Below are positions 1,026-54,615 of a stretch of DNA of 64,000 bases, piece by piece. Source of the DNA: Macrostomum lignano (taxonomy: Eukaryota); NCBI GenBank assembly GCA_002269645.1, contig NIVC01000046.1, forward strand, positions 267,306-331,305. The letters are read 5' to 3'. The translations under genes were made by a program, and so were the position numbers. Each line of letters opens with the position of its first letter. The stretch's first letter is position 1. The notes beneath the pieces were generated by a model. It saw only the letters and a list, made by a program, of their open reading frames with translations, did not search any database and had not been told where the DNA came from.

Positions 1026-1800
1026 TTGACTTACTTTGACTTAGCTGCAGGGCTGTCCCGGAGGGGACACAGTGGGAAGGCGCGAGCGCCCATTCCGCTA
1101 GTCCCTGAACGGCCGACGCGTCGCTATGGACGGAGGGTTGGCGCCGCCCAGGGAGGTCCCCCAGTGTCGCCAGCAGCTATAATGCTCTCTGGAAAGGAGA
1201 GTTCAGCCCTGCGGGTGGCCCGAAGGTAGCGCATGAGCTGATTAAAGTTTTCGGGTTTGCACGCTTCAGTAATAGATGTGTGTGGCCCGAGGTAAGTGAG
1301 TCTGGCCCGCGTGAAGGCGGGACAGATGCTGACGAAATGCTCAGCGGTTTCGTCACCTGAGTTGCAGAAACTGCAGGTGGCGTTGGTGGCGTTGCCCTGC
1401 AGGTACTGGTGCCTGGAGAAGCAGCCGTGACCAGAGAGGGTCATGGTGGCAGCCCGGATGTCTCTGCGCGAGAGGCGCAAGAGAAGCTTCCGGAGCTGGT
1501 GAGAGGGCTGAGGGACAGCGCCTCTGGATTGCCTGCAGTTCGTGCGGTTCGCCCAAGTCGAGCGGTGCTGAGTCCTGATCCACGCTTTGATGCGCGAGTC
1601 GATGACACAGCCAGGAATCGGGACAAGAGGTTCGGGGCCGAGAGAGGAGCCGGAGGCACCAACTTTTGCAAGGGTGTCAGCCAACTCATTTCCTCGGATC
1701 CCCACATGCCCCGGAACCCACTTAAGGGTAATTTTGTTGGCGGAACCCAACACGTTGAGGAGTTTGATACAGTCGAGGATGTATTTCTCACGTTCCCCAT
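1026..1800 (-). mobile_element. 5'-truncated non-LTR retrotransposon 3' end (RNase H C-terminus + CCHC-like knuckle; I/R1/Loa-type group)
   Basis: ORF 1124-1753, extendable to ~1790, reads LDCIKLLNVLG..ITLKWVPGHVGIRGNELADTLAK (RNase H WVPGH..GNE.AD), then TLSGHG.F.RH and CSFC...DETAEHFV..C. A short AAGTC/AAGTA-type tail lies at ~1026-1045 on the minus strand. Confidence 0.85.
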
Positions 1801-2620: not shown

Positions 2621-5086
2621 AGCTGCCGGTGAGTTCCTGTACTGATACTCTAATTGACTTTGCTTATCCGGGGTTTGCTTATTTCCCATTGCTTGACTAG
2701 AGAACTGAGCCATTTGTGTACCGTACTTTGCTGTATTTTACTCATAGTGAAGCCGCCTAATTGCCTGATTATTTCGCCTAAGGGCCTAATTGTTAACGAT
2801 TACTAAACTCCTCATTTTTCACACCTTCACCATCACTTCACCCATGGCTTGCTAAGCCTTCTCCCGGGGTGGCAAAGCATAAGGAAGTTTGGGTAAGCTA
2901 ATGGCCTCTCCCCGTGCAAAGCCCGCCTGTGTGTTCGTGCTGCGGGTCCGTGTGTGCGTGCAGTAGAGGGAATTAGCGAGTCATGGCACAGAATGGCAGC
3001 AGGAAGGTTGCAACCCCATGCTGACGCGTCCCTTCGCCCTGAGCAATCTAAACTATAGCTAGTACATGTTCATCTCACACTACTCTTAGTAATTGAAGGC
3101 TCAAGTCCGCCTCATTCACAGCCACAAAGGATCCCCTGCTGAGAAATCCTCCAGATTGAGCCCAGAGTTCCCGATCATGCCCCAAGCAGAGGCCCTGTAC
3201 TCGGCTGCATGCGTCTCCCCTGTTAGCCTAAATCTCCTGGTAACCAATCCAGACGGGGCTCTAGCCTCGAGAGGTCTGGTCGTAAGATCCAGGTCACATA
3301 GAGTGGTGGCAGCCATTCGGTCACACTGTGACCGAGTGACCAATTATTGCACTTTGGCTACAGGTGGGGTCCGTGTGGGTCCTTGGCTACTTTTTAAAGG
3401 CTACTTTTCGCCGAGATATACACTACGGAGATAGGAAGTTTACATTTTTTCAGCACAAAAATTGTTATTGCTTTTGATAGGAGGCAGATCCAGTGTTCAT
3501 CTTTTGATATGTTGTGCCTTTCTTATCGCTCTATTGATATTCATATATAGCTTTCGTTCAGAAAACTAGGATTCAATGTAAACTTTTTATTCTACCTACA
3601 TTTCCTGTACCTAAAGATCATAAAAAGTATGGCACAGCTCAAATATTTTGTTTTATGAATCGATTTTATCATCTCTGTTACAAATATTGTTACACAGTCA
3701 GCTAAGGATGACAAAATAGATTCCAATGAGCTGAGCCGTGCCATTTTAATGGTCTTCATGCACAAGACATATGCAATTGTACGTAGAACAAGAAATTAAC
3801 ATTGAATCCTAATTTTCTGAACAAGCCTTCGGGCCTCAGGTCTCAGAAATAAATCAATTAGAGTCCTGGCCCCCCACTCCTGTCAGATGGTCAGCCCCAT
3901 GGTAGCTTGATCGTGTGGCGAGCAGTCTTAGGTCCTATAGCTAAGAGAGGGATAGCGAGAGACAAGCAGGGAGAATTTTGAAGGTAGAAATTAGCTAATC
4001 CGCAGACTAAGCTAACTCGCTGCCACCAGCCCGTGCGTCCTGGCTCACCACACCGGGGCTCTCGAAATCGGGCTTCCGACTAGAGGGGGCTTTGCATTTA
4101 CCTGCCAACTAGTGTCTTTTTGCTGTCAATCTCGAAGTCATAGCCGATGATAAGGGACACTGCTGGGACTAGATCGCATTGGCCATGCAGGTACAGAGGG
4201 GACTTGTGCAGGGGATTCTTGCAGTGGCGAGTCTATGGGGTAGCTACATGTACTATTACATTGCTAAATACGAGGAATTGTACTTTTGGCCTTTAACGCG
4301 CCAACCAGCCTCTCGTAGCGCTGATGATAGACTAACTCGAACTTCAGAGACCTCGCACGATTCATTACCCGAGCCGCTTGGCGAACCTAGAGTGCACAAA
4401 GTACATCTCTGGTGCCGATTCTGCACTTCTGGCAGTTTTGCTCACTGATTTGATTGATTGATCGACTGAGAACTGCTTTGCCATTGGTCCACTGTGACCG
4501 GCGCCTACTAGCTTAGCTATTCATCTGAGCCATCGGCGAACAAAGAAATAAAACCGATAAAAATAACTGTTAGATTTAACCTTCTCCTCAAATCACTTCA
4601 CACTTCAGATTGAATTGGAGTTTCAGACTACTAGAAGTATTATTGAATGACTTCTGCCTCGATTACAGCACTACTGAACAAAATGAGCAAAAGTGTGCGC
4701 CTAATTCAGCTACTGAAACAGGGGACAGATAAGGGATCACCCAATCAAGCAAGTCTAGGTAGCCCCTCACCCAACCAATCAGAAACTCAACAGCCGGAGA
4801 CCAGGAAATCCACAGTGACCGAATCGGCTTAGTGCTTCGCAGCTGTAGATTCGGGATGATGCTGACACAATCTTCGCTGATAGCTAGCAGGTGATGATCT
4901 TAACTTTGATGTTCGCTGCTGATGACCGGGGGACTCGTCCTTGATGATGATGGGGGAAGTCGCAGTCCTGGGATCAAGAAACGACGGTCGCGCTCCGGGA
5001 TGCCTCAAGCTAGGCTAAGGTCCCAGGAGGTGAGCGCAAGTCCGGAAGGTCGGAAGGTTGAGGTCCGAGTGGGCCAAAAACTCCGG

Positions 5087-5190
5087 TTTAAATAGCCGCC
5101 AACTGGACCGCAGTTTGTTATAACGGAACACGTCGATTCTGATTGGCTGAGCCGTTTTGTTAAAATGAGCGCCGAATTTTCTGATTGGCT
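5087..5190 (-). promoter_or_regulatory. Putative Pol II promoter facing left (two CCAAT boxes + TATA)
   Basis: CTGATTGGCT (reverse CCAAT) at 5139-5148 and 5181-5190, then TATTTAAA on the minus strand at 5087-5094. Confidence 0.35.
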
Positions 5191-6140
5191 AAGCTTGTCG
5201 CTACCCAGAATCACGTGACCGAGAGATCCTATCAGTTCCCACAGGGTCGTAAAGAGATGACAGGTGCGGCCATAAATCACTCAAAATCGCAACAAAATGA
5301 TTTATGACTTTTCGCGTAGGATTGACAGAAATTAATGAAAAAATATACATTAGAAAGCTCTTATTAAATAGAAAGTGAAGATAATGAAGAGAAATCGCTA
5401 ATCGCTAATCCCAAAGTACTTTTAGGGGTAAAACGTATAGCTGTCAAAGCTGTCACACGCTTGAGTGAATCCGAACAATAAGCTCTGACCTCATAAATCT
5501 TGATGGCCTGTCAAACTGATGCGAAAAAAGCTACCGCCCGCATCCTCTCAGACCATCTGGCGCCCGTTTCAACACTGAGTGAGGCGCAGGTGGCTGTCAG
5601 ACCAGCTTCGAAAGCGATGATTTATGACCCAAAAAGCAATGCCTATGTTATTATGACTACTAGTATGGCCAGACATTATATCTAGTATAGATTCTATGAC
5701 TATTCGCAGAAAAATGATAAAATGCCCACTGCCCACTGTTAGTAGGCAAGTAAGTTTAGAGCCCATGTGCTAGCGCGGGATTTGGGAAAAAGTGCGTCCT
5801 CATCACGTTGCTTTAGTTGTCCTTGGCAGAATTGCCTTACTGCTGGTTTTGCCTATAGTAGGGGCAATGACGCTCCAATTGAAGGGGATAACCTAGGAAC
5901 GAAATTGCATATATGACACCTTAATAAATATATCCAAGATATTAGGATGCAACCATGACGCAATTAAAAAGTCTTTTTACACTACTGCAAGTAGAAATGA
6001 TAATATATCTTTTCACAGACCCAAACGAAGAGTTAAACAAAATTACCCAAAAATTTTCATATCTTCGATACAGCATGCAAACAAAAATAGGACGAAAACT
6101 GACTAAAAAACTAAAAGTAAATTCGTATAATTAAAAAATA

Positions 6141-6181
6141 ATTTCAAAGCTCTCCATTTAATCCCATATATTGACAGCGCT
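6141..6181 (+). repeat. Left inverted repeat ATTTCAAAGCTCTCCATTTAATCCCATATATTGACAGCGCT
   Basis: Matches the reverse complement of 14649-14689 at 40 of 41 positions. Confidence 0.9.
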
Positions 6182-6461: not shown

Positions 6462-7348
6462 TTACATTTTAAAAGTACAGTTAAAGTTTTTGCATGAATA
6501 CAATTTGCTGGCTTCTGTCATGCGTTGATAAGCTTGGCAGAGCTGTTTAGAAGCGTTTTTTGGAGCCGCCTCTGCTCCGCTGGCGAATCGCCACTGGTGT
6601 AGCCACGCGCTAGAAGGAGGCTCATCAAAAAACTGCACGTGAATTTGCTTCGAGCAGAAGCTCTTGGTGCAGTTTGTTCCGCGCCGGGGTAGGCAAACCA
6701 TCGCCGGCCACCAGTTTTCTCCATCTGTTGGCCAGTAACCTAGTACAAGCGATCCAGGTTGAATTTTCTGACGCTTGGCTGCACTATCGGCTGGAGCTCG
6801 AGCTGGCGGTCGCTTTCTAGCTAGGCGACGTCCTGATCCTATGTGGACAGCGACATCAGCGGAAGCGTTGCCAGCGGCGGCATCGGCAGCGGAGGTTGAG
6901 GCGACGCCATCGCCAGCGGACGCGGAGACAACAGCGCCATCAATGTCGTTATCGCTGTTGCCGTACAGCTGGTTTACTATACCATTGAGATCCTCCGAGT
7001 TAAACGGCGAGTAGGACGGCGTCCGACAGGACGGTGTCAAGCAGCACGGCGCCAGCCACGGTGTCGCTAGGCACAGCGGCGCCAGACACGGTGGCGCCAG
7101 GCACAGCGTCGCCAGGCACAGCGCCACCAGCGGCAAGCAGGACGGGAGCAGTCGGCCGCTTTGTCTTCTTTGCCGCCGATGTCGATGCCGCTGGTTTTTT
7201 GCCATCGGCACGGCGGAGGAGCCCTGGACGCAGTCGCTGATGGGCCCGCAACCGACACGGAGTCCATGTCAGCAGACGGCGGATTTTGCATCCTATGCAG
7301 AATGCTGTCCAGGTCGTAATCTAATGGAGGAAAGATTGAAAGTAGCAA
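6462..7348 (-). CDS. PWWP-domain terminal exon preceded by a frameshifted Ala/Ser/Pro-rich linker
   Basis: KIQPGSLVLGYWPTDGENWWPAMV...IHVQFFDEPPSSAW fits the PWWP pattern (G.LV.AK..G..WWPA.V ... V.FF.....AW). The upstream linker is spread over ORFs 7067-7348, 7000-7251 and 6462-7211. Confidence 0.75.
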
Positions 7349-8741
7349 GTTTTTTAAGCGAATTCCTTTAACAAGGAGAAAAAAATTTAGAACTGACCAT
7401 CTTTTTTATTGCTAAGGGTAAATTTTTTGGTCATTTCTGACAAAATTAATAAATTTCTTTGCATTTATAGCGCATTTTAATCGTACGGGTTATTCGCAAA
7501 TTCTAATTTCCCTCAAATGCTAGCAACCATGCTGTACTCACTGTCGCCATCGATGCCGCCGGCGAGTTCGTTGGCCGCCCTCTGCAGCCGGCTGCCTTGA
7601 ATTGGAGCTTTGGCGCTCAGGATGTCCTCTTGCAGCGCTGTCGCACTCGACGCCAACTTCTTCGTTAGGTCACGTTTTTTCTTTCGCCTCTCCTTGGTCT
7701 GGCCCTGTTTGCATTTTCAGACGGGATTGCAGGTTTGATGGAGTCAGATCAGTAAAATTAATGAAAAAAATACGATATTGTTGGGCTGCGCCCTTCCAGT
7801 GCTTGTGTTTTCAGTTTTCATGCCACCCCGCCCCGTCCCCCGTCTCGCGCCCGGGCCAGGGTTTGTGAGAGGCGTAAGCCTTAACCCTGGCCTACCCCTT
7901 TCTGCACCCAGACCCCGGCGCAACTTCTGTCCAATCTAGGTGCTGACCCTACCCCCTCCCTCTTTGCCCGCCTCACCCTTGGGCTGCTCGTATTGGCTGG
8001 CTGGCTGAGAAGCCGGCTGGGCCCCAGGGTTTGGCTCGCCCTCTCCATTCTGCCCCACCCCTCCCCCCTTTTTTGTGTAAATATTATTTAAGGGCCCGCC
8101 CTAAGCGTGCTGCGCTCCACGTTTCTTTCTTTTTGTTTGTATTCTATCCCGTTCGTCGGCGTCCCTCTGCAAACCTGCTCTCTGCAAGCTAATAACTCGT
8201 GACTCCCGCAATCGCTGATTATTCTGCTTCGTGCCAATAAACGCTTCGCCAATAAACGCTTCGCGAATAAGTCTGTAAACGCAGAGGTGAGCACGTGCTT
8301 TCGTCTTTCGGGTTGCCGCGTGGGGCCGGGAGCTGGTAGGGACCTGGGACCGGTGAACACTCGCTGATCTCAGGGTGGTCGGTCCGGCGAACTCTCGCCG
8401 AGCCGAGCGAAGGGCGCGTAGGAGTAGCCGGGGTAGAGGGCTGGGACCGGGGTGTCTTAGGCGGGAGGACCCGAACCCTGACCCGTCCAGCGGCCATTAG
8501 GTCGAGACACAACAATATAATACTCGTAATGGTGTAAACTACATTCGTACATTGGTGCAAGGGCTCAAATGCGCAGCTTTAATGACTGAACCTATGTTAT
8601 ATGCAGCTATTCAGTGTATTGAATTTAGTTCTTATTCAGGACTATTTAGTTGCTAAGGCATCCAATTTTACGCTTAAAATGTAATTTTTGTCGTTTCAGA
8701 AGTCTTCTGTGACAATTATTTAGCAAATTTAGCAATTTTAC

Positions 8742-9205
8742 CTGGTAAAATTGGCGCTGCACACCTTCGTTGTGATTCTGGTGGTCAGCCATGAGCCGCT
8801 GTTCCTCCGCAGAGCAGTTCGACAGGCCCATGACTTCCAACCATTGCCGAAACTTTGAAACGGTAACGTTCTTGAGCAGTGGAGAATACCTTTCTCGATA
8901 TTGATAGAACAGTCTATCAAAGGACCCGTAAGGAAATACGAGCGTCAGGTCATCGTCCTTTGGACGCTCAGCGAAGCGCTGGGCCAGCAGCTGCATGAGC
9001 AGGTCGGCGCAGGGCGCGACGCTGGCCCAGGCCGACCCATGCTTGGCGTTGGACTTGTGACTTTGCACCTTTAACGGCTCGTTAGGTGCTTTGAGCCACC
9101 TTGAGCCGGGCGTCAGAGATTAGGCAGGTAGAGGCTACGCCTTGCCGGTTGGCATTTCCATCACCAAAACAGATAACCATGCCAACGGCCAGGTATGTCA
9201 CCGTC
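8742..9205 (-). pseudogene. Tyrosine recombinase catalytic exon (one frameshift near 9085-9110)
   Basis: Acceptor CAG ends at 9206 and donor GTAAAA starts at 8741. It reads YLAVGMVICFGDGNANRQGVA (R) / KVQSHKSNAKHGSA (K) ... NVTVSKFRQW (R) ... MADHQNHNEGVQRQFYQ (H, Y), the order of YR catalytic residues. Confidence 0.75.
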
Positions 9206-9437
9206 CTGTGAGGATGGAATTAGAGGTATTTATTTATTTAGAGGTAATTTTCTGAGCTGTCTCAGATTTCTGTAATTTCTGAGCTAATAAAATTTGCAGT
9301 GCCATTCTGAATACCAGTGCTATTTTGAATACAGTGCCATATTTATCCCAGTGCCATTTTGAATGCCAGTGTCATATTAAGCCCCATCAAACTTTTATAC
9401 CTCGGCATAAAAAGCATTGGGAAAAAATTTAACTCAC

Positions 9438-10399
9438 CTGTCCTTGGCTGATCGCGCTTCTGCCAGCACAGCGTCTTTCATCTGAAAGACTGCTGCAATC
9501 TGCTCGCCTGTGAGCAATTCTTCCTCTCGGCGGTCAACAAGCTTCGCGTAATATTCAGCCTTCGACCCCATTGAACTTGCAGACCAATATTTTGTGGACT
9601 GCCTGTACGAGGTCAGCTGTTGGTGCATCCCACCGTCTACGATCTGCTGGAAACGGCGGGTAATTTAAAAATTACCGAATTTCTCAAGTGCGGACACCAT
9701 TTGTTTTAGAATCGAGTAGGACAAACTGTTCAGGTACTCGCTGATTTTATCGCGCAGATCTTCGCTGATCAGTTGATTGAAGCTCGTAATGTCTAGACGC
9801 TGCATTAGCCGTTTGAGGTAGCAGCGGATCTCGCGGACCGTAGCCGGCTTTTTTCGTCCGCCGAGAGAGCTGGCCAGGAAGACGCAAAGTGCTTCCACGT
9901 CAACTGTCGATGGGTGCTCAGCCACTGCTACTCTGGCTGGCACTTTGGCCCTGGCTTCGATCAGTTTCTGCTCTTTCTCGGCTCGGACTACGCTAGGGTG
10001 GCTGTTTCGCTTGTGGCTGCTAAGCTGATTCGCGTTGTTCTTCCATTCGCCGCAGACTGCACACTGTAGTGCCGTCTCGGGCATCGGGCCAGCAGTTCTT
10101 TGGTGCGTATGCAGCTCAACTGCAGCTCGCAGCGCTTGCAGAGCTTTTCTCTGCAGAGCATCTGCTGGTTACTGTGCATTTACTGTGCAAACCTGTGCAG
10201 TTTCTGCTAGATTTTCTTTCGTGCTTTCTAGAACAGCTGAGTGCGCCCTTTTGATGTGTTCGCTGAATCTGGATTCTTTAATTGGCATGCAGCTGCCGAA
10301 CGGGCAAATGTATTCTTGCCCGGCCCGCGTTTTCTTTGGCTGCTGGGTGCTGGCGGGCTGCTGAATGGACGACTTTGTCCATTTCTCCCACTGCAACAA
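9438..10399 (-). pseudogene. N-terminal exons of the same YR gene: two C2H2-like zinc fingers + integrase SAM-like core-binding helices
   Basis: 10399-9665 is one frame with a single in-frame TAA (10169-10171). It contains CPFGSC..(x12)..HIKRAH, CAVC..(x12)..HKRNSH and TVREIRCYLKRLMQRL...SYSILKQMVSALEKF. Exon 9438-~9645 (..EELLTGEQI..AKDR) has a phase-2 GTGAGT donor matching the 9205 acceptor. Confidence 0.65.
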
Positions 10400-11081: not shown

Positions 11082-11865
11082 TTAGCAAAGCCGCTGCACC
11101 GCCTGAGCCATCTTCTTGGCAGCTCGGAAGGATAAGTCACTCTCAGGTAGGTAGCACCGAACCGCGTCGCTGCGCCAGTCACCGACAGCCTTGATCTCAT
11201 CCTCTGCCAGCTCAGCTCGAAGGCACCACGTAGCGCCGCCCCGCCGCAGGCTGTGCGCAGAGTACAGCACACCCTGGCCCTGAAGTCCAGCGCAGCGCAG
11301 GGAATTTCGGAGAAAGCGCACGAAATAGGAAGCTGACAGATTGACCCGCTTTGAGCCGCTTGACGCTGAGAAGAGCGGGGTGGACGGAGCCGAGATGCCA
11401 TTGACACGTAGGTGCCGCATCATGGCTTCAGTCGGGCAGAGTGGGTGGCCACCGGACAGTTTCGGCAGCAGCACGCGGTGCACCCGGGCTCCGAACTGGT
11501 TGGTTTTACTGTGCCTCAGGCTCAGAACCAGGCCGGATGGCACTGCTCTCAGGTCCCTTCGCTGGAGCGCTTGCACTCCTGCTGACTCGGGGAACAGGCT
11601 GGATTTGCGCAACATCGCCCACCAGCCGCACAGGATTGCCGCCCAGCATGCAACGCCTCGTGGGTCGCTATCGTGAATGGTGCGAAGAATGCGAAGCAGG
11701 TCGTCAGGTGAGAGGGCCTGAGCTCGCCGTGGTGTGCCGCTGAGGGCGCGCCTGGAGCCTCGAACCAGGAGGAGCACCAGGGGACGCTTCGTGATGTCGA
11801 CCGCGCTGGCGGATCTTAGAAAAGCAGAGATTGCGCTGAGATGTACTCGGAGGCTACTGGAGTGT
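11082..11865 (-). CDS. Ngaro-type tyrosine recombinase (N-terminus lost in the deletion)
   Basis: SLRVHLSAISAF..DITKRPLV (upstream of the called start), AMLRKSSL (R), HSKTNQFG (K), HSLRRGGAT (HxxR), GDWRSDAVRCY (W, Y): all catalytic residues present. Confidence 0.9.
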
Positions 11866-12975
11866 TCATCTTGACTCGATGACTCGGGCGTTTCAGTGAA
11901 TCGGCAGCGTTAATGAGGTCCCTCAGGAAAGGCCTCCCGTGAGGTACAACCTGCGCAGACCAGTTCAGTTTGCCAATCACCCTCCGCAGCATCCGCTTGG
12001 AAAGCCTCGGCTTCGCCAGGCAGTCTTTCAGCATCAGCTGCAGCTCTTCCAACCTTTCGGGCGGTAGCGACATCGTTCCAGCCACAGAGTCGAATCTGAT
12101 TCCCAAGAAAATCATGCACTGAGTCGGTGGCACACATTTCTCTTCGTTGATCTCAATTCCGAGGCGCACAACGAGACTCTTGAGCTCCGAATAGAAGTCC
12201 CTGCATTCAGTCAAGGAACCGCAGAAGGCGAAATCATCAATATAGGCCTCCGTGTTATTGAAACCGCGTTTGATCATCATGAGTCTGATGGCAGAGCTCA
12301 GCTTTTGAAAACAGTAGACGGAACCCGCCGCTCCGAATGGAAGCCTGGTGTCGATGAGGTAGACTGGCTCGCGGCCACCAGGAGGCAAGTACTTAATTCC
12401 GGCGAGCATCTGATCATCAGGGTGGATCCCGCACGAACGGTAGGCTTGGCTAAGGTCAACTTTACACATGTAAGAGCCGGGACGCAGTCTTCTGCTGAAG
12501 TTCGTAGCGGATGTCAGACGGAATTTTGAAGGCATTGAGTAGTAGTCGTTAACCGCGAGTCCCTCAGGCCGGCTGCAATCGTAAATGAGTCGCACTGAGG
12601 CGGATCCAGGCTTAGGAATGGCTCCCAAGGCACTGACAATCTGGGGCTTGATGCCAGTCGGGCAGCGGCGATACCGACCGCGCAGAACTTCTTTCTGGAT
12701 CTGTGCATCGGAGGAATAATAGTTCAAGGAATAATGTTCATGTTAATGTTCAAGGAAGGATGTTCAAGGAATAATAGTTTTCCAGTTCGATGTTTGGCTG
12801 GGGATCACTGCATATCTTGTTGGGTAATGCGGAATCCATGAGTTACACCAGAAATTATAAAACTGGCTTCATCTTTGGAGATATCAATTTCTTCCAATTC
12901 TTCTTTCCAGGCTTCAAGATGCATGTCACTCGGTAAGCAAAGATTTTTCATAAAACTATCGGTATTGACGAGATT
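11816..12975 (-). CDS. Ngaro-type reverse transcriptase, truncated before RNase H, with a disrupted N-terminus
   Basis: IPKPGSASVRLIYDCSRPEG.AVND, KVDLSQAYR, RLPFG, YIDDF, FLGI.FDS. The upstream piece (12790-12975) reads LEAWKEEL...FIISGVTHGFRI, the typical DIRS RT lead-in, followed by a stop and a small duplication. Confidence 0.9.
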
Positions 12976-13083
12976 TTCTAGAGTTTAGATAGCATTTTTG
13001 GTGTGGGAGTCGCTCTGAACAGCTGATTCACTAAGGGGATACGGGGGCGACTCCTGATGTTCCCGTGCCCCTGAGTCCTCGAG

Positions 13084-14160
13084 TCATTGGCGTGGAAACT
13101 CCGGATCCCCTTCGCGGTGGAAGGAGGCTTCGGAGTGGCTCTGGCCGCACCGGCGGCATCGGTGAGCAAATCGGCACTGAGCTCTGGAGCAGCCACCAGC
13201 CCGGTTGAAGTCAAAACAGATTCCCTGGCCTCCTTTTCGAGTTGCACGAGCGTTCGCCTGATCCGATTTGCCTGGCGCCATCAGGTACGCTGCCACAAGC
13301 ATAAGGTCAGATGCTGGCTGATTCCAACTCTGATTCTGCTGCTTCTGCGTGCGACACTCGTCATCGAACCGCATCACCTTCGGCCGATCAAAGCCAAGAT
13401 CGAACAATTCGCCAACCCGAGCATTAATGCGAAGATACTCAACCAGCTCCGAAACATCCACGGTTCCCGTCTCGGAAAGACGCACCAGCTTGCTGTCATG
13501 CAACATGTGAATCAGCGCGTTCGCGTTTCCAGTAATCCAGTCACCGAATGACATCGACTCAACAGCCGCTGACTTTGACTTCATACTCACGTGGCCCGAT
13601 TTATCGACTGTGGTGGCCAACCCGGCATCCTTCTGCTTACGGCTACTTAGGTGTTCCACCGGCCTGTACGCCCCTCCGGCAACTGTCCCTTCTGACTCAA
13701 GGTTGGGGCCCTCATTCAAAACCCTCTCAGAAAGGCACGACATCTCACCGGGGGGATCATTGCGTCTCCGTAAATCGCGAGCGTCAGCTTCTAGAGCGGT
13801 TTCTTGCTTGCGCAGAGTCAGGAGGCGCACCCTCTTCTCCGCGAGCTCCAGCTCCTTGTCCAGGTCGCCTCCCACAGCGCCAGTCGGGCCCCTGCCGCCG
13901 CTCCAGCCGCCTTGAGGCTCAAAGGCCGCAGCTCCACGTCCGCTGCTTTGACTGCTTCTGGAAGTGTTGTCCGTGTCTAGTTCTTTTTGCCGTGGATCAG
14001 TCGGGGCATTGAGTTCCAGTTGCGTTGCTTCGTGATGAGCAGCCAAGCGCTCCCTGAGTACTTCCTTACAGCCGTTTGCAGAGAGGCCTGCCTGTCTAAG
14101 CGCGGCCTTCAGGCCTTTCACAGTCTCGGGCATATGCACTCTGTGGTTTGAGTCAGCCAT
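13084..14160 (-). CDS. gag-like ORF1 with N-terminal SAP-like motif and C-terminal CCCH-type zinc finger
   Basis: TVKGLKAALRQAGLSANGCKEVLRERL (SAP pattern); CFDFNRAGGCSRAQCRFAHRCRRCGQSH. Confidence 0.8.
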   Translation of the reverse strand: MADSNHRVHMPETVKGLKAALRQAGLSANGCKEVLRERLAAHHEATQLELNAPTDPRQKELDTDNTSRSSQSSGRGAAAFEPQGGWSGGRGPTGAVGGDLDKELELAEKRVRLLTLRKQETALEADARDLRRRNDPPGEMSCLSERVLNEGPNLESEGTVAGGAYRPVEHLSSRKQKDAGLATTVDKSGHVSMKSKSAAVESMSFGDWITGNANALIHMLHDSKLVRLSETGTVDVSELVEYLRINARVGELFDLGFDRPKVMRFDDECRTQKQQNQSWNQPASDLMLVAAYLMAPGKSDQANARATRKGGQGICFDFNRAGGCSRAQCRFAHRCRRCGQSHSEASFHREGDPEFPRQ

Positions 14161-14648: not shown

Positions 14649-14689
14649 AGCGCTGTCAATATATAGGATTAAATGGAGAGCTTTGAAAT
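14649..14689 (-). repeat. Right inverted repeat
   Basis: Reverse complement of 6141-6181 with one mismatch. Confidence 0.9.
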
Positions 14690-15323: not shown

Positions 15324-18300
15324 TTAGTAGTAACCATTTTGCCGAAGCATCTTAACGGCCAATGCAGCGGCTCGTTCAACGCTCACAGAGACGATTTGTG
15401 GCTGTTTTTATGAAATAGAAAAGTTGGTCGTCATTTTTTGTGCTTTTGTCAATGAAGAATATTAAGAAACATTCTATTACTACGACGGGCAACTTACTTT
15501 TAATCTAACCAGCTGGCTTATTTTCGTTCGCAGTCGTCTGTGCGTCAAAACGCACTTTTTGTTTTTGTGAATCAGTCTCACCAGCAGTTGTTCGTCTGAG
15601 CAAAACTCCAGCAAGTCCTGCACGTCGGAGGTATCAGTTTCTAGGATTTCTTCAAACCAAGCGCTTGACTCAATGAAACTAACTGATGCATTCATTGCTA
15701 GTTTCAGAGACTTCCAGAAAGCATCAAAATTTATATAGTACCAATTTATGTACAGACATGTTACAGGGAAGAGCTCGATCAGACTCTGCGGCAGGAAATT
15801 TAAGGCCAGCTGCGTGTCATGCTCAAAACAAAACTTCCAAGCTGAGTCGCAATGTTTTATTTGCTTCCAAACTACTTCTGTATAATCCTGTTGGTCTGCT
15901 GCTTTAAACTCTAATCGAATTCCTTTACGAAGAAGTGCTTTCGATGCACCGGTACTTAATACGTGGAGAGCCTCATCAAGCTTGCCGAACTTCATATAAG
16001 ACATGACTATCAGACACTGTCGGGCAGAAAATGCATAGTCGGGAATCCTCGATGCGTCTTTCAGCAACGACTGCAGCTCATGGTCGCTAGTACAGTCATT
16101 CTTGCCCAATCTCAATAGCAAACTTCGCACTGCGTCATAAAGATCTTCGTACTGGATGTTGTCCCAGTGGATTTCCGTGCTCCTTGCTTTCATCACTGGC
16201 TGCATAAGGAACGGATGAAAGTGGAAAGAGCCGTCTGGCCTGACTGGCCGCAAATTGGCCTTGAATTCGAGAATAACGTTATGAAGATCACTAATGACTT
16301 TATTAACGACAGTAGCGATGCGTTTCTTCCCACTGTGTCCTTTCTTGAGATACAGACAGGCATTCCGTAGAAAAAAGTGATTCATCAGTTTATTTTCATC
16401 ATTTGAGTTGCAGACTAAGCAGCTGTGTAGCTTTCGTAAGGCGATTCTCGTTAGGTAAATCAAACTTTCAGGCTTCCAGTCTTTTGCTGGTGTTTCATCC
16501 AGCAGATAAAATAAGAGATTCTTAGCGTGATAAGTTTTCAACCCTTGAACTTTTGGTGAGATCACTTTCTTCACTATGAACTTTATTAGCACAAACACCT
16601 GACCTTGAATGTCATTAAGGCTTCTGAACAGTTTTCGCTCCAAAAATGTGGTGCTAACTCGCAACTGATGGCCCTCCAATCCCGGAGAGGCAGCCGTCAC
16701 TAAATGACACGGAAATTCCGGTTGCGACAGAGTGCTCTTCAAGTCTTGGAGCACAGCTGGGTCGATGTTGCTCTTCTCATACAGTGGCTGTTGAAGTAAC
16801 TCGATTGGAGGGTAACTGCAGGAGCGAACAGCCCACACGAGATCCACTGCTGGTTTCCAGTCCATTCCAAACCAGGATTGGACCGGGTTTTCAGCTGAAA
16901 AGGAAATTGGACCAAATTGAAGTGTCAATTTTTGCTAATCAAAAGACGTGTTTGCTGTAAATTGTTACTTTTTGCCCGATTGAAACAATCTTTTTTGCCT
17001 CACCTGTGTTTGGGCAGTAGACGTGTCCGTTTTGGACTTCAATGGCATAAATTCCCAAACTTTTGTCACATTCGCAAGTCTCCTCAATGTGAATTACGCG
17101 GTTTCTGTCAATAACAGTGACATCAATGTCCGAGCCATGGTCTGTCCGGCCGTCCAATCGCACCAGACTGCTTGACCAGCCCTCGGGAAAGCTGCCAACA
17201 AAGTGAATGTCGTGCTCAACAAACTCGCCAAAGTCTAGTCTGCTTCTCACTATGGACTGTGTGACTTCGGCTAATGCACTTTGTATCTTGGCTCTTTCTT
17301 GAATAAAACCGGCAGAGTTTAAAGTCGAGTGAAGGTTCTTGCTCAACGAAACTTCAAATTTGTTGCTGTCACTGCTGCAATTAGCGTATTTACATTGTAC
17401 ATTAGCACAAATAGTCAATGAAGCAACGAATATCCATAAGAATACTTACTTTGTTGCTGGATCCGTAATCGAGCTAGCCTGAGTATCAATCTTTGATGAT
17501 TGATCATCAAGCAGTTGACGCAATGCCACCACAGAATCAAGACTGCTGTAATCCGGTAGCTGATTGACAGTTGAGCTGTGTCGCATCAGTTGAACCAGAG
17601 TTTCACATTGACCTAATACGCACGCCATTACAGCAGCCGTTAATCCAGCTCTATTCTTGATACTTGGATCGCATCCTTCTTTAAGCAACTGCTGGATGAC
17701 TTCTTCTCTGCCGGCGCATGCAGCAGCATGCAACACTGACTCTTTCTCGTCGTGACGAAGTGCTTTCGGGTCGGCGCCAGCGAGAACTAGCTCAGCTATG
17801 GAGTCTGAAGAGCCGCTGTAAGCTGCTGCGCAAAGAGGTGTCACTCCTCGATTATCTGATAAATTAGGATCAGCATTCGCTTTCGAAAGCATGGCCCGTA
17901 GCAAGATTGTATATCCTTTCTGAGCTGCCAGAAGCAGGGGCGTCACATGATCAACTCTTTTTGAGTTGCTGTCCGCCCTCGATGAAAGCAGCAATTTTAC
18001 TACCTTCTCAAAGCCTTTCCCAGCCGCGATGTGCAATGCGGATGCACCAAAAGTTCGCTTAATATTGACATCAGCATGAGCTTCCGTCAGCAGCTCCACG
18101 ATAATTGAATGGTCGTGCCAAGCGGCCAGGTGTAGAGGGCTTTGTCCGTCATTGTCTTGCAAATCGACCTGCGCCATCCAATTAATGAGTAGTCTTACGG
18201 CTCCTTCCTGGCCGCGTTCGGAAGCCCAGTGAATCGCTGACCGACCAGTTGCATCCTTGGAGTCGGGATCAGCGCCTCTTTGCAGAAGCTGTTCAAGTTT

Positions 18301-18387
18301 TAGCACATTTCCATTGATTGCTGCCAGTCTTAGTAGTGATACTTCTTTGTCAATTGACGCAGGTGCATTTTTAGAAGGAATATCCAT
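15324..18387 (-). CDS. Ankyrin-repeat / Mab-21 (cGAS-like receptor, cGLR-type) nucleotidyltransferase, paralog 1; ~927 aa, 4 exons
   Basis: Exons 18387-17450, 17374-17004, 16894-15498 and 15401-15324 join in frame through GT-AG introns of phase 2, 1 and 0. About 8 ANK repeats, then FVGSFPEG...GSDIDV, PAVDLV and Mab-21 C-terminal KTYHAKNLLFYLLDETP..W and NHFF. Confidence 0.85.
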
Positions 18388-34739: not shown

Positions 34740-37669
34740 ATGAACCTGCTCCCGGAGCTGAAGAGCGCCGCCATGGACGGCAGAGTCGGCAAGGTGCGGC
34801 AGTTTCTACGGAGCAGCGTCAGTCCGGACGTCGCTGACGACCGGCAGCGGACGGCGCTGCACTGGGCAGCCGAGCGAGGCCAGTCCAGGGTGGCGAGGCT
34901 TCTCATCGAGGCCGGAGCTCAGCTGGACGCTCAGGACAGCAGCGGAGCGACCGCTCTGCACCTGGCCTCGATGCACGGTCACCGGGATGCGGTCCGGCTG
35001 CTGCTCGAGTCCGAGGCCGACACCAGCCTGGTGACGAAGTCCAGCTCCTCGGCGCTGCACCTCGCCTCGCGGAACGGCCACCTCGAAGTCGTGCAGCTGC
35101 TGAGCCAGCAGGCCGACTGCGACCAGCAGCTCGCAGACGGAGACTCGCCGGTGCACCTGGCTGCTCAGCTCGGGCAGCAGCTCGTGCTCGCTGCTCTGCT
35201 GCTGGCAGCCGCGGATCCGAGCGCCAGGAATGCGCGCGGCCAGACCCCGCTGCACTCCGCGGCTCTCCACGGCCAGCGGGCCGCCATTGAGCTGCTCGTC
35301 CGGGCGGGAGTCGCCGCCGACTCGCTGGCCTGCGACGGGTCGATGCCGCTGCACGCTGCGGCAGCGATGGGGCACGAGGCCGCTTCCCAGACTCTGCTGC
35401 AGCTCGGCTGCGGGCTCGGTGACCTCAACAAGGACGGGCTCAGCCCCGCTGCCATCGCCTGTCGCTTCGGACATCGCGAGGTCTTGCATCTGCTGCTCAA
35501 GAATGCGACTCACGCCAGAGAGCTCGGAATCCGGCACGAAGGAACAAATAGACGGCTGCAGCAGCTGATTTATGATCGTCTTATCATTGAACCTCGAGCT
35601 CACAGACTGTCGCTCAGGTCGTCTGCATTCGATGAGAGGTTGGGAGCTCGTAAATCTTGTTTTACTCAAATTTATGTTAATCATTTTTGAAATGCCGATT
35701 TCTTGTTACACAGAAGCGAGCAGGTGAGCATGCGCGACGACGAGCATCTAATCGAAGTCGAACCAGAAGACGACGGCTTCCCAGCGTGTCAAGAGAGCAG
35801 CACTAAGCTGCACAAAGCACTGAAAGATTGCGGTTTTGTTCTGAACCGAGTCAAGCTGCAATCTGCGTGCTCGGATGCTTTGCAGCATATTGTTAGAAAG
35901 CGACTGGACGCAGATGAGTACAAGGACTACCAAGTGTACATCGTCGGGAGCTACAGTGACGGCTGGTCCAACAGCCTGGTTCGACTGGACGGTCAAACTG
36001 ACGCAGACTCCGACATCGACGTCTGCCTCATAGCGATAGGCATGCTGTTTCATATCAAAGGCAGCTGCAGCTGCATCAACTGTTCATTTTTTGGAGAACG
36101 TCACGCTGAAGTGGAGTATGAGAACGGTCACGTCAAATGGGGCGAATCGCGTAAGCAAATTTACAATATTTTCGGTTTAGCGTTGCCAGAGAGTTTGCAT
36201 AACGAATGCCTAAAACCTTCACTGCAGCTTCGAATCCGTCGCAGCGGTGGGCCGGATCTGACGAGAGACCGGCAGTGGATCTGGTTTGGGCCTTCCGCTG
36301 CTGTTGCTATCCAAGAATCGAGGTGCTGCAGCCAGGGTACAAAACTTGCATTGCTCCATCAGTGCTGCAGAGCCTGAGGCAGGAGATGCTGGAGTCTCCC
36401 TGTCACCTGGTGTCGGCGGCTCCACCTGGCAAGGACGGACAACAGCTGAGGGTCAGCACCACCTTTCTGGAGCGAAGGCTGCTCAGAAGCCTCACAATCG
36501 AACAGGGACACGTGTTCCTGCTCATCAAGTTCATCATTAAGAAGGTGATTGCAGCTCGCGTGAGTGGACTGAAGACCTACATTGCCAAGACTCTGATGTT
36601 CCAGCTGCTGGATGAAACGCCCGCAGTGGACTGGCACAGTAGCCTTCTAATCCAGTTAGCGAGAAGGGCACTGCTCATGCTGTTGAACTCATTGAGAGAC
36701 ACACCAGATCCGCGTAAATGCATGAGACACTTCTTTCTCAAAGACGCTTGGGTTTGTCTGAAGAAACATCACGATGAGAAGGAAGTCATTGCGCTCGCAG
36801 TACGTAACGTAGTCGATCATCTCCCAGAAATTGTCTCGCAATACGAAAGAGTTCTGTCGCCTTTAGTGCAGGACAAAAGTTTTAATTTTCACCCGTTCCT
36901 GGTGCTGCCAATCCTGAATCCGAGGCCCGTGCCGCTGTCTTCCAGGCTGCAGTTCCACGATGTCTACGATGCGATCCGGTCAATTTTATTGAAGCTCAAT
37001 CTCGGACGCTGCCTGCTGGAGGACAAACACGAGATGCTGAAGTTGGCGAGGAGAATTCCGGAGTACGCTCGCTCTGCAAAATATTCGCTGATTGCGTTGA
37101 TTTACTTGAAGTTCGGCAAGCTGTACGCAGCGCGAAGGGTGCTGCACTCGTGTCGATATCATCAGGTTGGCCGAGTTCTGCCCCGCTTGCGTGAGCAAGC
37201 GACTGATGCAGATGCAGAACTGGCGGTGTGGGAGCACTTGGAAGGGGTCAGCTCCATTTGGAAGCTCCTGATTCAATCTGACAAGCCTTTGGCTTTCGAA
37301 TTCCTGCAAGACAGGTTAAAAGATTTTGTCTCGCTGAGCTCTGGTCAGTTTGACTGGTACTATGTGAACTTTGATGCGCTGCTCAAAAACCTGAGCATCT
37401 GGTTAGACTACGACGTCGACTTGGAGCTTTGGTTCGAAGACAACCTTCGACGCGCCAGACTTGACGTTCAAGAGCTGCTTGTGACGCTGGAACTTTGCAA
37501 TGATGACGAAATTCTTGTCCGACTGATTCACAAGCATCGGAAATTAATTTGCGGCCATCAGGAGACGAGACAGAAGGCTGAAGAGCTGATGCAGCGATTG
37601 GTAAGTGATCCTGTTTTGCGGAAATTTCAAAATTTGTGCCAGTTAGTTCTGTACTTACAGGTACCTTGA
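34740..37669 (+). CDS. Ankyrin-repeat / Mab-21 (cGLR-type) nucleotidyltransferase, paralog 2; at least 905 aa
   Basis: Exons 34740-35638, 35714-36150 and 36228-37600, with phase 2, 1 and 0 introns at the same positions as paralog 1. The last exon is either 37661-37669 or 38132-38644. About 8 ANK repeats; IVGSYSDG...DSDIDV; PAVDLV; KTYIAKTLMFQLLDETP..W; RHFF. Confidence 0.85.
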
Positions 37670-38904: not shown

Positions 38905-41900
38905 TACGTCTCATCTGACACATCTCACCTGTAATTACTACACCTCATCTGACACATCTCACCTGTACTAACTGCACCTCATCTGACACATCCCACCTGT
39001 ACTTACTGCACCTCATCTGACATATCTCACCTGCACTTACTACACCTCATCTGACACATCTCACCTGCACTTACTGCATCTCATCTGACACATCCCACCT
39101 GTACTTACTGCACCTCATCTGACACATCTCACCTGCACTTACTGCACCTCATCTGACACATCTCACCTGTACTTACTGCATCTCATCTGACACATCCCAC
39201 CTGTACTTACTGCACCTCATCTGACACATCTCACCTGTACTTACTACACCTCATCTGACACATCTCACCTGCACTTACTGCACCTCATCTGACACATCTC
39301 ACCTGCACTTACTGCACCTCATCTGACACATCTTACCTGTACTAACTGCACCTCATCTGACACATCTTACCTGTACTTACTGCACCTCATCTGACACATC
39401 TCACCTGCACTTACTGCACCTCATCTGACACATCTTACCTGTACTAACTGCACCTCATCTGACACATCTTACCTGTACTTGCTGAACCTCATCAGACACA
39501 TCTTACCTGTACTAACTGCACTTCATCTGACACATCTTACCTGTACTTGCTGTACCTCATCTGACACATCTTACCTGTACTTGCTGTACCTCATCTGACA
39601 CATCTTACCTGTACTTGCTGTACCTCATCTGACACATCTTACCTGTACTTGCTGTACCTCATCTGACACATCTTACCTGTACTTACTGCACCTCATCTGA
39701 CACATCCCACCTGTACTTACTGCACCTCATCTGACACATCTTACCTGTACTTACTGCACCTCATCTGACACATCCCACCTGTACTTACTGCACCTCATCT
39801 GACACATCCCACCTGTACTTACTGCACCTCATCTGACACATCCCACCTGTACTTACTGCACCTCATCTGACACATCCCACCTGTACTTACTGCACCTCAT
39901 CTGACACATCTCACCTGTACTAACTGCACCTCATCTGACACATCTCACCTGTACTAACTGCACCTCATCTGACACATCTTACCTGTACTTACTGCACCTC
40001 ATCTGACACATCTCACCTGTACTTACTGCACCTCATCTGACACATCCCACCTGTACTTACTGCACCTCATCTGACACATCCCACCTGTACTTACTGCACC
40101 TCATCTGACACATCTTACCTGTACTAACTGCACCTCATCTGACACATCTTACCTGTACTTACTGCACCTCATCTGACACATCTTACCTGTACTAACTGCA
40201 CCTCATCTGACACATCTTACCTGTACTTACTGCACCTCATCTGACACATCCCACCTGTACTTACTGCACCTCATCTGACACATCCCACCTGTACTTACTG
40301 CACCTCATCTGACACATCCCACCTGTACTTACTGCACCTCATCTGACACATCCCACCTGTACTTACTGCACCTCATCTGACACATCCCACCTGTACTTAC
40401 TGCACCTCATCTGACACATCTTACCTGTACTTACTGCACCTCATCTGACACATCCCACCTGTACTTACTGCACCTCATCTGACACATCTTACCTGTACTT
40501 ACTGCACCTCATCTGACACATCCCACCTGTACTTACTGCACCTCATCTGACACATCCCACCTGTACTTACTGCACCTCATCTGACACATCCCACCTGTAC
40601 TTACTGCACCTCATCTGACACATCTTACCTGTACTTACTGCACCTCATCTGACACATCCCACCTGTACTTACTGCACCTCATCTGACACATCCCACCTGT
40701 ACTTACTGCACCTCATCTGACACATCCCACCTGTACTTACTGCACCTCATCTGACACATCCCACCTGTACTTACTGCACCTCATCTGACACATCCCACCT
40801 GTACTTACTGCACCTCATCTGACACATCCCACCTGTACTTACTGCACCTCATCTGACACATCTCACCTGTACTAACTGCACCTCATCTGACACATCTCAC
40901 CTGTACTAACTGCACCTCATCTGACACATCTTACCTGTACTTACTGCACCTCATCTGACACATCTCACCTGTACTTACTGCACCTCATCTGACACATCCC
41001 ACCTGTACTTACTGCACCTCATCTGACACATCCCACCTGTACTTACTGCACCTCATCTGACACATCTTACCTGTACTAACTGCACCTCATCTGACACATC
41101 TCACCTGCACTTACTGCACCTCATCTGACACATCTTACCTGTACTAACTGCACCTCATCTGACACATCTTACCTGTACTTACTGCACCTCATCTGACACA
41201 TCCCACCTGTACTTACTGCACCTCATCTGACACATCCCACCTGTACTTACTGCACCTCATCTGACACATCCCACCTGTACTTACTGCACCTCATCTGACA
41301 CATCCCACCTGTACTTACTGCACCTCATCTGACACATCCCACCTGTACTTACTGCACCTCATCTGACACATCTTACCTGTACTTACTGCACCTCATCTGA
41401 CACATCCCACCTGTACTTACTGCACCTCATCTGACACATCCCACCTGTACTTACTGCACCTCATCTGACACATCCCACCTGTACTTACTGCACCTCATCT
41501 GACACATCCCACCTGTACTTACTGCACCTCATCTGACACATCTTACCTGTACTTACTGCACCTCATCTGACACATCCCACCTGTACTTACTGCACCTCAT
41601 CTGACACATCTTACCTGTACTAACTGCACCTCATCTGACACATCTCACCTGTACTAACTGTACCTCATCTGACACATCTTACCTGTACTTGCTGTACCTC
41701 ATCTGACACATCTCACCTGTACTTACTGCACCTCATCTGACACATCTTACCTGTACTAACTGCACCTCATCTGACACATCCCACCTGTACTTACTGCACC
41801 TCATCTGACACATCCCACCTGTACTTACTGCACCTCATCTGACACATCTTACCTGTACTTACTGCACCTCATCTGACACATCCCACCTGTACTTACTGCA

Positions 41901-44124: not shown

Positions 44125-44611
44125 TGGAAAAACAAAAGCTATCATAGTTAGTTACAGATTTCAGACTGAATTACCTGTTCCAGCCAATTTCATCGGATAA
44201 ACACAACTATCTATCCCAATGCGAGCCGTTATATTTCATGCTTTTTTCAAAATGATAGAAAAATGCAATTAAAGTGCTTTACAGTAGAGCATTAAGTAAA
44301 TTAACACTAAAACTTTGGTTAAAGTGTCAAAAAGTATTTTAACTCAATTCAATCCAGTCAAAACATGAGTTACGATTAATTTTTTTGATTTTGGATACAA
44401 GTACGGAAATTAAATCTTTGCATAAATATTGAGTAAACTGCACTCACCAGAGAAGATTAGAGTAATTTTTTAAAAAAAGATTTGAAAACAGTTTTATAAT
44501 CGTGCCAGCAATGAATGATTGTTAACTAATTAATGAAAAGTAGTCATGTTGAAATAAACAGTCAGAATTTCTGCCGCACAGCAGCTGATCTTGTTTGAAA
44601 TATCGATTGAG

Positions 44612-45733: not shown

Positions 45734-54615
<8,882 letters not shown>

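Follow-up and report, generated by a model that had tools for sequence, protein, structure and literature searches.

A decayed, probable tyrosine-recombinase transposon gene with a probable PWWP end in Macrostomum lignano

DNA transposons of eukaryotes that use a tyrosine recombinase (YR) are few and poorly understood. A 64,000-nt stretch of the Macrostomum lignano genome (assembly GCA_002269645.1, contig NIVC01000046.1, forward-strand positions 267,306 to 331,305; hereafter the window, numbered from its first letter) raises the question of whether another such lineage exists. Between 10390 and 6462 on the minus strand it carries, in this order, two zinc fingers, a helical N-terminal domain, a catalytic exon resembling that of a YR and an exon encoding a PWWP domain. 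Is this the gene of a Crypton-like transposon, and does the PWWP domain belong to it? We consider it probable that the locus holds a dead copy, with introns, of the one gene of a YR DNA transposon, from a small lineage that is undescribed as far as we could find, and that this copy most likely ended in the PWWP domain.

The protein encoded by the window gene is a member of a conserved family. When 1.84 billion representative sequences were searched exhaustively with HMMER, ten homologue clusters (E 1.5e-27 to 5.9e-11) were recovered over query residues 18-462, all of which have two fingers, a helical domain and the motif series GNAxRPD, HKT, xYR and H-x3-VAxQxY. The homologues stem from flatworms of the genus Macrostomum and from a few contigs of environmental samples or read archives, and two of them are hypothetical proteins of M. 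lignano. Since a homologue from a read-archive contig also has introns, located just before HKT and after YRKFIET, introns appear to be common in the family. Word-indexed protein searches gave no homologue, whether the query was the recombinase part or the PWWP, an alignment-based search returned P0006 alone, and two scans of JGI metagenomes found no relatives.

In the catalytic exon of the window (minus strand), the motifs are GNANRQG at 9159-9139 (Arg I), SHKSN at 9062-9048 (Lys), SKFRQ at 8858-8844 (Arg II) and the His/Tyr motif HQNHNEGVQRQFYQ at 8783-8742 (H-x3-V-x-R-Q-F-Y), which is followed by the donor CAG/GTAAAA; the last catalytic motif of exon 9205-8742 reads HQNHNEGVQRQFY. K, R, H and Y are kept in all seven full-length aligned sequences, the window copy included, and Arg I is nearly invariant. 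The order of these residues is the one expected of tyrosine recombinases and type IB topoisomerases, namely Arg I, Lys (beta-hairpin), Arg II, His/Trp III and nucleophile Tyr. Because the motifs recur in an independently recovered family, the R, K, R, H and Y residues picked in an earlier note on this DNA, made from its letters, are conserved positions and not chance matches. Judged from sequence, they may fill the corresponding catalytic roles.

The N-terminal part is conserved as well. In a 13-sequence family alignment, H48 and H53 of finger 1 (CPFGSC…H…H, 10306-10289) are invariant. Finger 2 (CAVCG…H…H, 10063-10049) has the classical C2H2 pattern C-x2-4-C-x12-H-x3-5-H, with C102, C105, H118 and H123 invariant across the family. 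The Pfam zf-C2H2 models stay below threshold on the window protein, and finger 1 of one homologue matches the U11-48K CHHC finger (22.8 bits, threshold 21.1). In an AlphaFold model of the protein core, which has a predicted local distance difference test score (pLDDT) of 83.7, the N-domain that follows the fingers is all-helical. All exon pieces listed in the earlier note were found on the minus strand, at its coordinates or close to them. These include the phase-2 intron joining the exon that ends at 9438 to the first catalytic exon, with its donor at intron start 9437 and its acceptor at intron end 9206, and a downstream exon that had been placed at ~7542-7710 and lies at 7704-7542 (Table 1).

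Known recombinases were not recovered by sequence comparison. Neither Phage_integrase (PF00589) nor DUF3504 (PF12012) matched the window protein, its homologues or the catalytic alignment, and the sole recombinase-related signal in Pfam was a non-significant one to Phage_int_SAM_1 (E 0.48). PDB sequences gave no match by phmmer with the window protein or by the family profile, and BLASTP showed the window recombinase to be unrelated in sequence to the YR of a neighbouring DIRS-like element (E 0.6). For profile-profile comparison by hhalign, alignments of Crypton, DIRS and bacterial YRs were rebuilt from the supplement of PMC3212892 after optical character recognition, with a possible loss of sensitivity; on these the family scored below 1% probability (E 0.1-0.8) against Crypton A, I, F and S, DIRS and prokaryotic YRs. 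The Crypton groups A, F, I and S taken singly gave 0.1-0.5% (E 0.11-0.59). As positive controls, the known YR groups detected each other at probabilities of 43-99%.

Structure comparison gave a different picture. A model of the whole core had lambda integrase as its first match in PDB, in a search that was weak, probably due to the relative orientation of the two domains, and the catalytic domain was therefore modelled alone (AlphaFold, pLDDT 82.8, predicted template-modelling score 0.80). Its top 40 matches in BFVD are mostly integrases, tyrosine recombinases and VLF-1, also when only the named ones are considered. The integrases are matched at probabilities of 0.8-1.0, and the best match has E 0.013 at probability 1.00, with template-modelling (TM) scores normalised to the query of 0.45-0.50. 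The YR and topoisomerase IB matches in PDB were the Tn1549 integrase, variola topoisomerase IB, an archaeal Xer (query TM-score 0.47) and YopR, at E 0.5-3, with unrelated sigma factors interleaved at similar E-values. Both the order of secondary-structure elements and that of the conserved residues fit a YR catalytic domain. The models place the domain in the YR fold with consistent but modest support, and the fold together with the R-K-R-H-Y set in a conserved family supports the tyrosine-recombinase identity proposed earlier. In our reading the family is a genuine, very divergent member of the YR fold.

Several observations weigh against this assignment. Besides the failed Pfam, PDB-sequence and hhalign comparisons, the Foldseek E-values are only 0.01-0.5 with TM-scores of at most 0.50, and the His of HxxR, three residues before Arg II, is replaced by T, S or R (NTAYR, VSKFR, VRTYR). 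Such a pattern would be expected if the family were not a recombinase, its R/K/R/H/Y pattern and fold matches being coincidental and its genomic units being mobilised in trans or arising as segmental duplications: no YR group shows significant sequence or profile similarity to it, no Foldseek E-value is below 0.013 and the HxxR His is absent. The predominance of integrases at high probability among the top BFVD matches, and the agreement of element and residue order with a YR catalytic domain, speak against coincidence, as does the make-up of the mobile units.

These units were found in two families of M. lignano loci, family A (three loci, L001, L002 and L005: beside a Miff gene, within a UQ_con gene and within a TRAM_LAG1 gene) and family B (two loci, L003 and L004), and the window copy is a third, divergent family beside them. 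Across 7.5-10.5 kb, identity between the copies of a family is 99.2-99.8%; the genes around the copies are unrelated, and the ends are sharp and identical. All five copies have intact open reading frames (ORFs) of 750 or 1134-1143 codons, and no other long ORF, no reverse transcriptase (RT) and no gag was found inside the units. Family A ends read flank/CCAT…GCC/(cc)cat, with CCAT on both sides in three copies, and show only imperfect inverted arms and no long terminal inverted repeats. Family B ends read flank/CCCC-TATAG-GCACGTTTATGAC … GTCATAAACGTGC-CCCC/flank, with CCCC in two copies, and have subterminal inverted arms of 13-14 nt. The presence of just a recombinase-like gene in each unit argues against trans-mobilisation or duplication of a non-recombinase. 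So do the asymmetric ends, in which inverted arms surround a spacer, as suits a recombination site and not the terminal inverted repeats of DDE-type elements. We regard a non-recombinase family as improbable.

An empty site for one family B insertion lies in the window itself, at ~5239-5244 within an uninterrupted paralogue of the repeat that hosts the insertion in L003. Window positions 3823-5239 are 90% identical to the right flank of that insertion and 5244-5806 are 83% identical to the left flank (counterparts at L003 6614-7205 and 16590-17982). The paralogue is contiguous, with a single CCC between the flanks. It further marks the window as DNA of Macrostomum or of a near relative. This comparison fits recombination at a 4-bp identity, as proposed for Cryptons, for which movement by recombination of a circle at 4-bp identity has been suggested (PMC13465315). 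The evidence supports families A and B as mobile elements that lack RT and are flanked by 4-bp repeats, features that define a Crypton in operational terms. One point on the other side is that a target-specific 4-bp target-site duplication made by an unrecognised transposase is formally still admissible.

Internal tandem arrays are present in both families, with ~445-bp units in family A (L001 10787-13132), partly coding, and units of ~80 and 190 bp in family B (L003 13398-14361 and 15001-15984); their copy number varies between element copies in M. lignano. The first exon of the family A gene (L001 9810-10120) encodes a beta-rich N-terminal segment of 64 residues, MAHRHKTRVLVYWQDQ…GAFVMYNDENGKSWIGCVGK, with the appearance of a small SH3- or Tudor-like barrel; searches of Pfam and PDB sequences with these residues gave no match, be it to a Tudor- or PWWP-like reader or to anything else. 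If this N-terminus were a reader of the Royal family, it would be a parallel to the PWWP of the window copy.

How close are these elements to Cryptons (Goodwin 2003; Kojima & Jurka 2011, PMC3212892)? They share with them a YR-type enzyme, the lack of RT in the family A and B units and frequent introns. The 4-bp flanking repeats of families A and B have, as in Cryptons, the appearance of microhomology with the target, not of a true duplication. CryptonS termini read TATGG, and the CCAT of family A is complementary to their first four bases. Circle-based movement is proposed for both. In contrast to Crypton groups, which detect each other, the catalytic domain of the family is invisible to PF00589, PF12012 and profile-profile comparison; the family also lacks the conserved HxxR His and has two N-terminal zinc fingers. 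Animal Cryptons are reported to lack terminal repeats, whereas family B has its 13-14-nt arms and the window a 41-nt inverted repeat that may or may not belong to the element, and a PWWP tail, probable in the window copy, is not known in Cryptons. The Crypton-like label given earlier therefore holds for the RT-free, mobile relatives with 4-bp flanks, and does not extend to sequence-level membership in a Crypton group, Phage_integrase or DUF3504. As we read the sequences, the family would by descent lie outside every described Crypton group. In the literature, with Repbase and Dfam outside this comparison, we found no paper describing the family or a combination of Crypton and PWWP.

The identity of the PWWP domain, already recognised in the earlier note, is clear. 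PF00855 scores 28.7 bits against a gathering score of 25.6 (E 2e-6), the solved PWWP of MSH6 is matched at E 4.3e-7 and those of NSD2/3 at 1e-4 to 4e-5, and the aromatic positions GYWP, NWWP and VQFF align with the MSH6 domain. The domain occupies ~6516-6728, with its NWWPA motif at 6716-6702, inside ORF 6462-7211. Of the splice path that had been drawn from the recombinase to this domain, the phases agree: donor 8742 and acceptor 7704 are both phase 0, and donor 7542 and acceptor 7320 are both phase 1. Against a family hidden Markov model (HMM) that excludes the window, the score is 97.9 bits before the 7704-7542 exon is added, 107.2 bits with it and 98.5 bits when the donor is read through, and the exon aligns to the C-terminal helix of the family. 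Because of this gain in family homology (+9.3 bits), the exon is part of the recombinase gene. Less complete is the second step. The frame in which the last exon begins stays open for 93 codons, but the PWWP ORF (7211-6462), which overlaps that exon by ~145 nt, is in a different one, so that at least one frameshift is required between ~7225 and 7067. The overlap contains 15-nt tandem repeats (7018-7133, in the linker of the last exon) and a T-run where a 1-base indel would yield the observed stop.

This required frameshift, together with the absence of PWWP from all ten homologue clusters (Pfam), weighs against a fusion. Both facts would be accounted for if the recombinase gene were a transposon remnant and the PWWP a separate exon or fragment of a host gene, for example of MSH6 or NSD type, or a captured fragment. 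The closest solved relatives of the domain are indeed the host proteins MSH6, NSD2 and NSD3, and an indel has to be assumed to reach its frame. In addition, all three frames are open across the G+C-rich repeat at 7067-7211, so that frame continuity there weighs little. Against a separate origin stand the strand and order that the PWWP shares with the recombinase gene, the two canonical, phase-matched introns that lead into its exon, and an intermediate exon that belongs to the recombinase gene by homology. Lesion density is similar in the upstream part of the gene. In the one ORF scanned downstream there is no MutS or SET-type coding sequence, and the stop lies 30 codons past the domain, followed by an arm of an inverted repeat and by other repeats. 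The recombinase gene and the PWWP both lie within that 41-nt inverted repeat. We regard a separate PWWP as a minor, though real, possibility and consider a recombinase-PWWP fusion in the window copy probable; the PWWP would then have been part of the same ORF.

The window copy is dead. Its reading frame is interrupted by two stops, both TAA, at 10171-10169, where the first coding piece ends, and at 9667-9665. A frameshift near 9085-9100 in the catalytic exon exposes a further TAA at 9084-9082, and at least one more frameshift is that of the last exon described above. The damage listed in the earlier note is thereby corrected from one stop to two, and its several frameshifts are specified as at least two. 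Finger 1 has no ATG in its frame; the one at 10382 is in a different frame. A 31-nt 'intron' in place of the ~9090 frameshift was rejected since the frameshift reading fits the length of the homologues; a 42-nt intron may be an alternative to the stop at 10171. Within intron 2, a G+C-rich block at ~7790-8560 resembles a separate insertion. It gave no tRNA or Rfam match and has no copy elsewhere in the window or in the fetched loci.

This decay, and the fact that the window's own family is known from one copy, which leaves its ends undefined, count against our account of the locus as a transposon gene. A decayed single gene could also be what is left of a host gene that arose by domestication, as ZMYM, KCTD1 and QRICH1 did from Cryptons. 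Its introns and regulatory-looking domains (fingers, PWWP) would suit that origin, as would its single copy within the window, and Crypton domestication is well documented (PMC3212892). However, the window gene keeps all five proposed catalytic residues, which are mostly lost in domesticated DUF3504 genes (PMC3212892). It carries many stops and frameshifts, is surrounded by other repeats within an inverted-repeat pair, and its relatives are multi-copy and 99% identical at unrelated loci. Domestication thus seems to us very improbable, and we retain the transposon gene as our reading.

Table 1. Features of the window discussed in the text (positions from the first letter of the 64,000-nt stretch)
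Feature	Position	Strand	Remarks
Coding piece 1 with zinc finger 1 (C-x-C/H…H-x4-H)	10172..10390	-	starts after acceptor-like ttgttgcag
Finger 2 (C-x2-C-x12-H-x4-H), then helical core-binding-like ('SAM-like') N-domain	9438..10168	-	ends at GTGAGT donor, phase 2
Intron 1	9206..9437	-	232 nt, GTGAGT…cacag, phase 2
Tyrosine-recombinase-like catalytic exon	8742..9205	-	family HMM built without window row: 97.9 bits
Intron 2	7705..8741	-	1037 nt, phase 0
Exon with C-terminal helix and basic stretch (GQTKERRKKKRDL…)	7542..7704	-	163 nt; enters phase 0, leaves phase 1
Intron 3	7321..7541	-	221 nt, GTGAGT…cattag, phase 1
Last exon: acidic/low-complexity linker, KRPPARAPADSAAKRQK (resembling a nuclear localisation signal), PWWP	6462..7320	-	TAA stop 6464-6462
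Right arm of 41-nt inverted repeat	6141..6181	.	~280 nt downstream of PWWP stop codon
Left arm of 41-nt inverted repeat	14649..14689	.	~490 nt upstream of DIRS-like gag ORF
DIRS/Ngaro-like retroelement	11082..14160	-	gag-like ORF, RT, YR; directly upstream of recombinase gene, same strand
Uninterrupted paralogue of repeat hosting family B insertion in L003	3823..5806	-	empty site ~5239-5244

The inverted repeat that surrounds the gene matches at 40 of its 41 positions, has sharp edges on both sides and was reproduced in none of 100 shuffles. Its arms, 8.5 kb apart, enclose the recombinase/PWWP gene together with a DIRS-like element; neither the repeat nor this element had been pointed out in the earlier note. 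The DIRS-like element, on the minus strand throughout, comprises a gag-like ORF (13084-14160) that contains a SAP motif, an RT (11816-12727; RVT_1, 39 bits) and a YR of classical type, HSLRRGG…Y (11082-11777), which Pfam detects only at E 0.15. No recognisable RNase H was found in the element, and the N-terminal region of its pol has one stop and a small tandem repeat (12722-12780). A search of the window for further copies of the element turned up the 41-nt repeat and nothing else, and the 41-mer is absent from the fetched M. lignano loci. Its inner part, CC[C/T]ATATATTGACAG, is loosely similar to the family B end (CCCTATAG…TATGACAG).

Inverted terminal repeats are a defining feature of DIRS1-type elements. 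The arms could therefore be those of the DIRS-like element, with the recombinase/PWWP gene nested later or carried as cargo in its 3' region; alternatively, it is the new element that ends in these arms, with the DIRS-like part as a nested insertion. No separate terminal repeats, inverted or direct, were found for either the DIRS-like part or the recombinase gene, and for the DIRS-like part this favours the first arrangement. Consistent with it, gag, RT and classical YR share one strand and come first inside the left arm, and family A has no long terminal inverted repeats. Set against this are the lack of an internal complementary region or of a partial third copy of the repeat, the shortness of 41 nt for an inverted terminal repeat of DIRS, the missing RNase H and the inverted arms near the ends of family B. 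From this single copy we favour DIRS arms, slightly and tentatively. In both arrangements the PWWP is inside a mobile unit, which argues against a host exon.

Elsewhere in the window, ORF 1124-1753 (minus strand) matches an RNase H C-terminal model (26.6 bits) and is probably part of another retroelement. Positions 24415-63872 are packed with minisatellite arrays, including a 34-bp unit repeated 153 times (38910-44125), a 21-bp unit repeated 104 times (49419-51593) and (TAGA)n at 52982-54018. Interspersed are ORFs with ankyrin repeats and Mab-21-like sequences (15480-18387, 34740-35690).

From the intact relatives we infer how such an element may move. It would excise as a circle, in which the joined ends would form a lox/FRT-like site of inverted arms around a short spacer. 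For family B the predicted junction consists of GTCATAAACGTGC, a spacer of 6-8 nt with the CCCC crossover, and GCACGTTTATGAC, and reads …GTCATAAACGTGCCCCTATAGGCACGTTTATGAC…. The circle would then recombine with a target identical over 4 bp (CCAT or CCCC), and the tetranucleotide would be left on both sides with no true target-site duplication. Catalysis and the circular intermediate are both predicted from sequence features. In the window copy the PWWP, reached as the last exon via two phase-compatible introns, could, if functional, tether the recombinase to methylated nucleosomes. Binding of histone H3 methylated at lysine 36 (H3K36me), and with it chromatin targeting, is conceivable on this model.

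Such a route can be compared with known systems. The joined ends of family B, as judged from the chromosomal ends, resemble the loxP and FRT sites of Cre and Flp in having inverted arms of 13-14 nt around a short asymmetric spacer, and the catalytic fold model matches integrases; unlike in those systems, the family B target shares just ~4 bp with the element, and in sequence the recombinase does not resemble Cre or Flp. DIRS and Ngaro elements are likewise eukaryotic mobile elements that use a tyrosine recombinase, and one of them adjoins the window gene inside the same inverted-repeat pair. However, the family A and B units have neither RT nor gag, and the recombinase is unrelated in sequence to the neighbouring YR and to the DIRS profile. 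The probable PWWP end recalls the chromodomains of chromoviral integrases and the tethering by the PWWP of LEDGF/p75, in which a reader of methylated histones is coupled to an integrating enzyme, and the window PWWP is MSH6-/NSD-like. Here the reader would sit on a tyrosine recombinase instead of on a DDE integrase or a host cofactor, in a fusion deduced from a damaged copy. A survey of fusions between readers and transposable elements highlights Chromo and PHD, not PWWP (bioRxiv 10.1101/2021.11.30.470311).

A bolder reading is that the family is a new superfamily of YR transposons, not Cryptons by descent, that is intact in M. lignano, has lox-like ends and in at least one lineage gained a PWWP reader of methylated histones. 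We consider this doubtful as a whole. If it were true, the window copy would represent the first self-contained, chromatin-guided YR transposase, with integration steered to transcribed, H3K36-methylated chromatin. If the PWWP fusion is real, the principle of a chromatin reader borne by the enzyme would extend from DDE integrases to tyrosine recombinases. Since this recombinase has diverged so far that it escapes the Pfam and profile searches applied here, domain-based annotation may overlook similar elements in other genomes. To our knowledge, no Crypton has been reconstituted biochemically. M. lignano is a laboratory animal amenable to transgenesis, and it harbours intact, near-identical and apparently recently mobile copies. 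Because these provide precise ends, a candidate lox-like site and an empty site, the circle-and-recombine model is directly testable.

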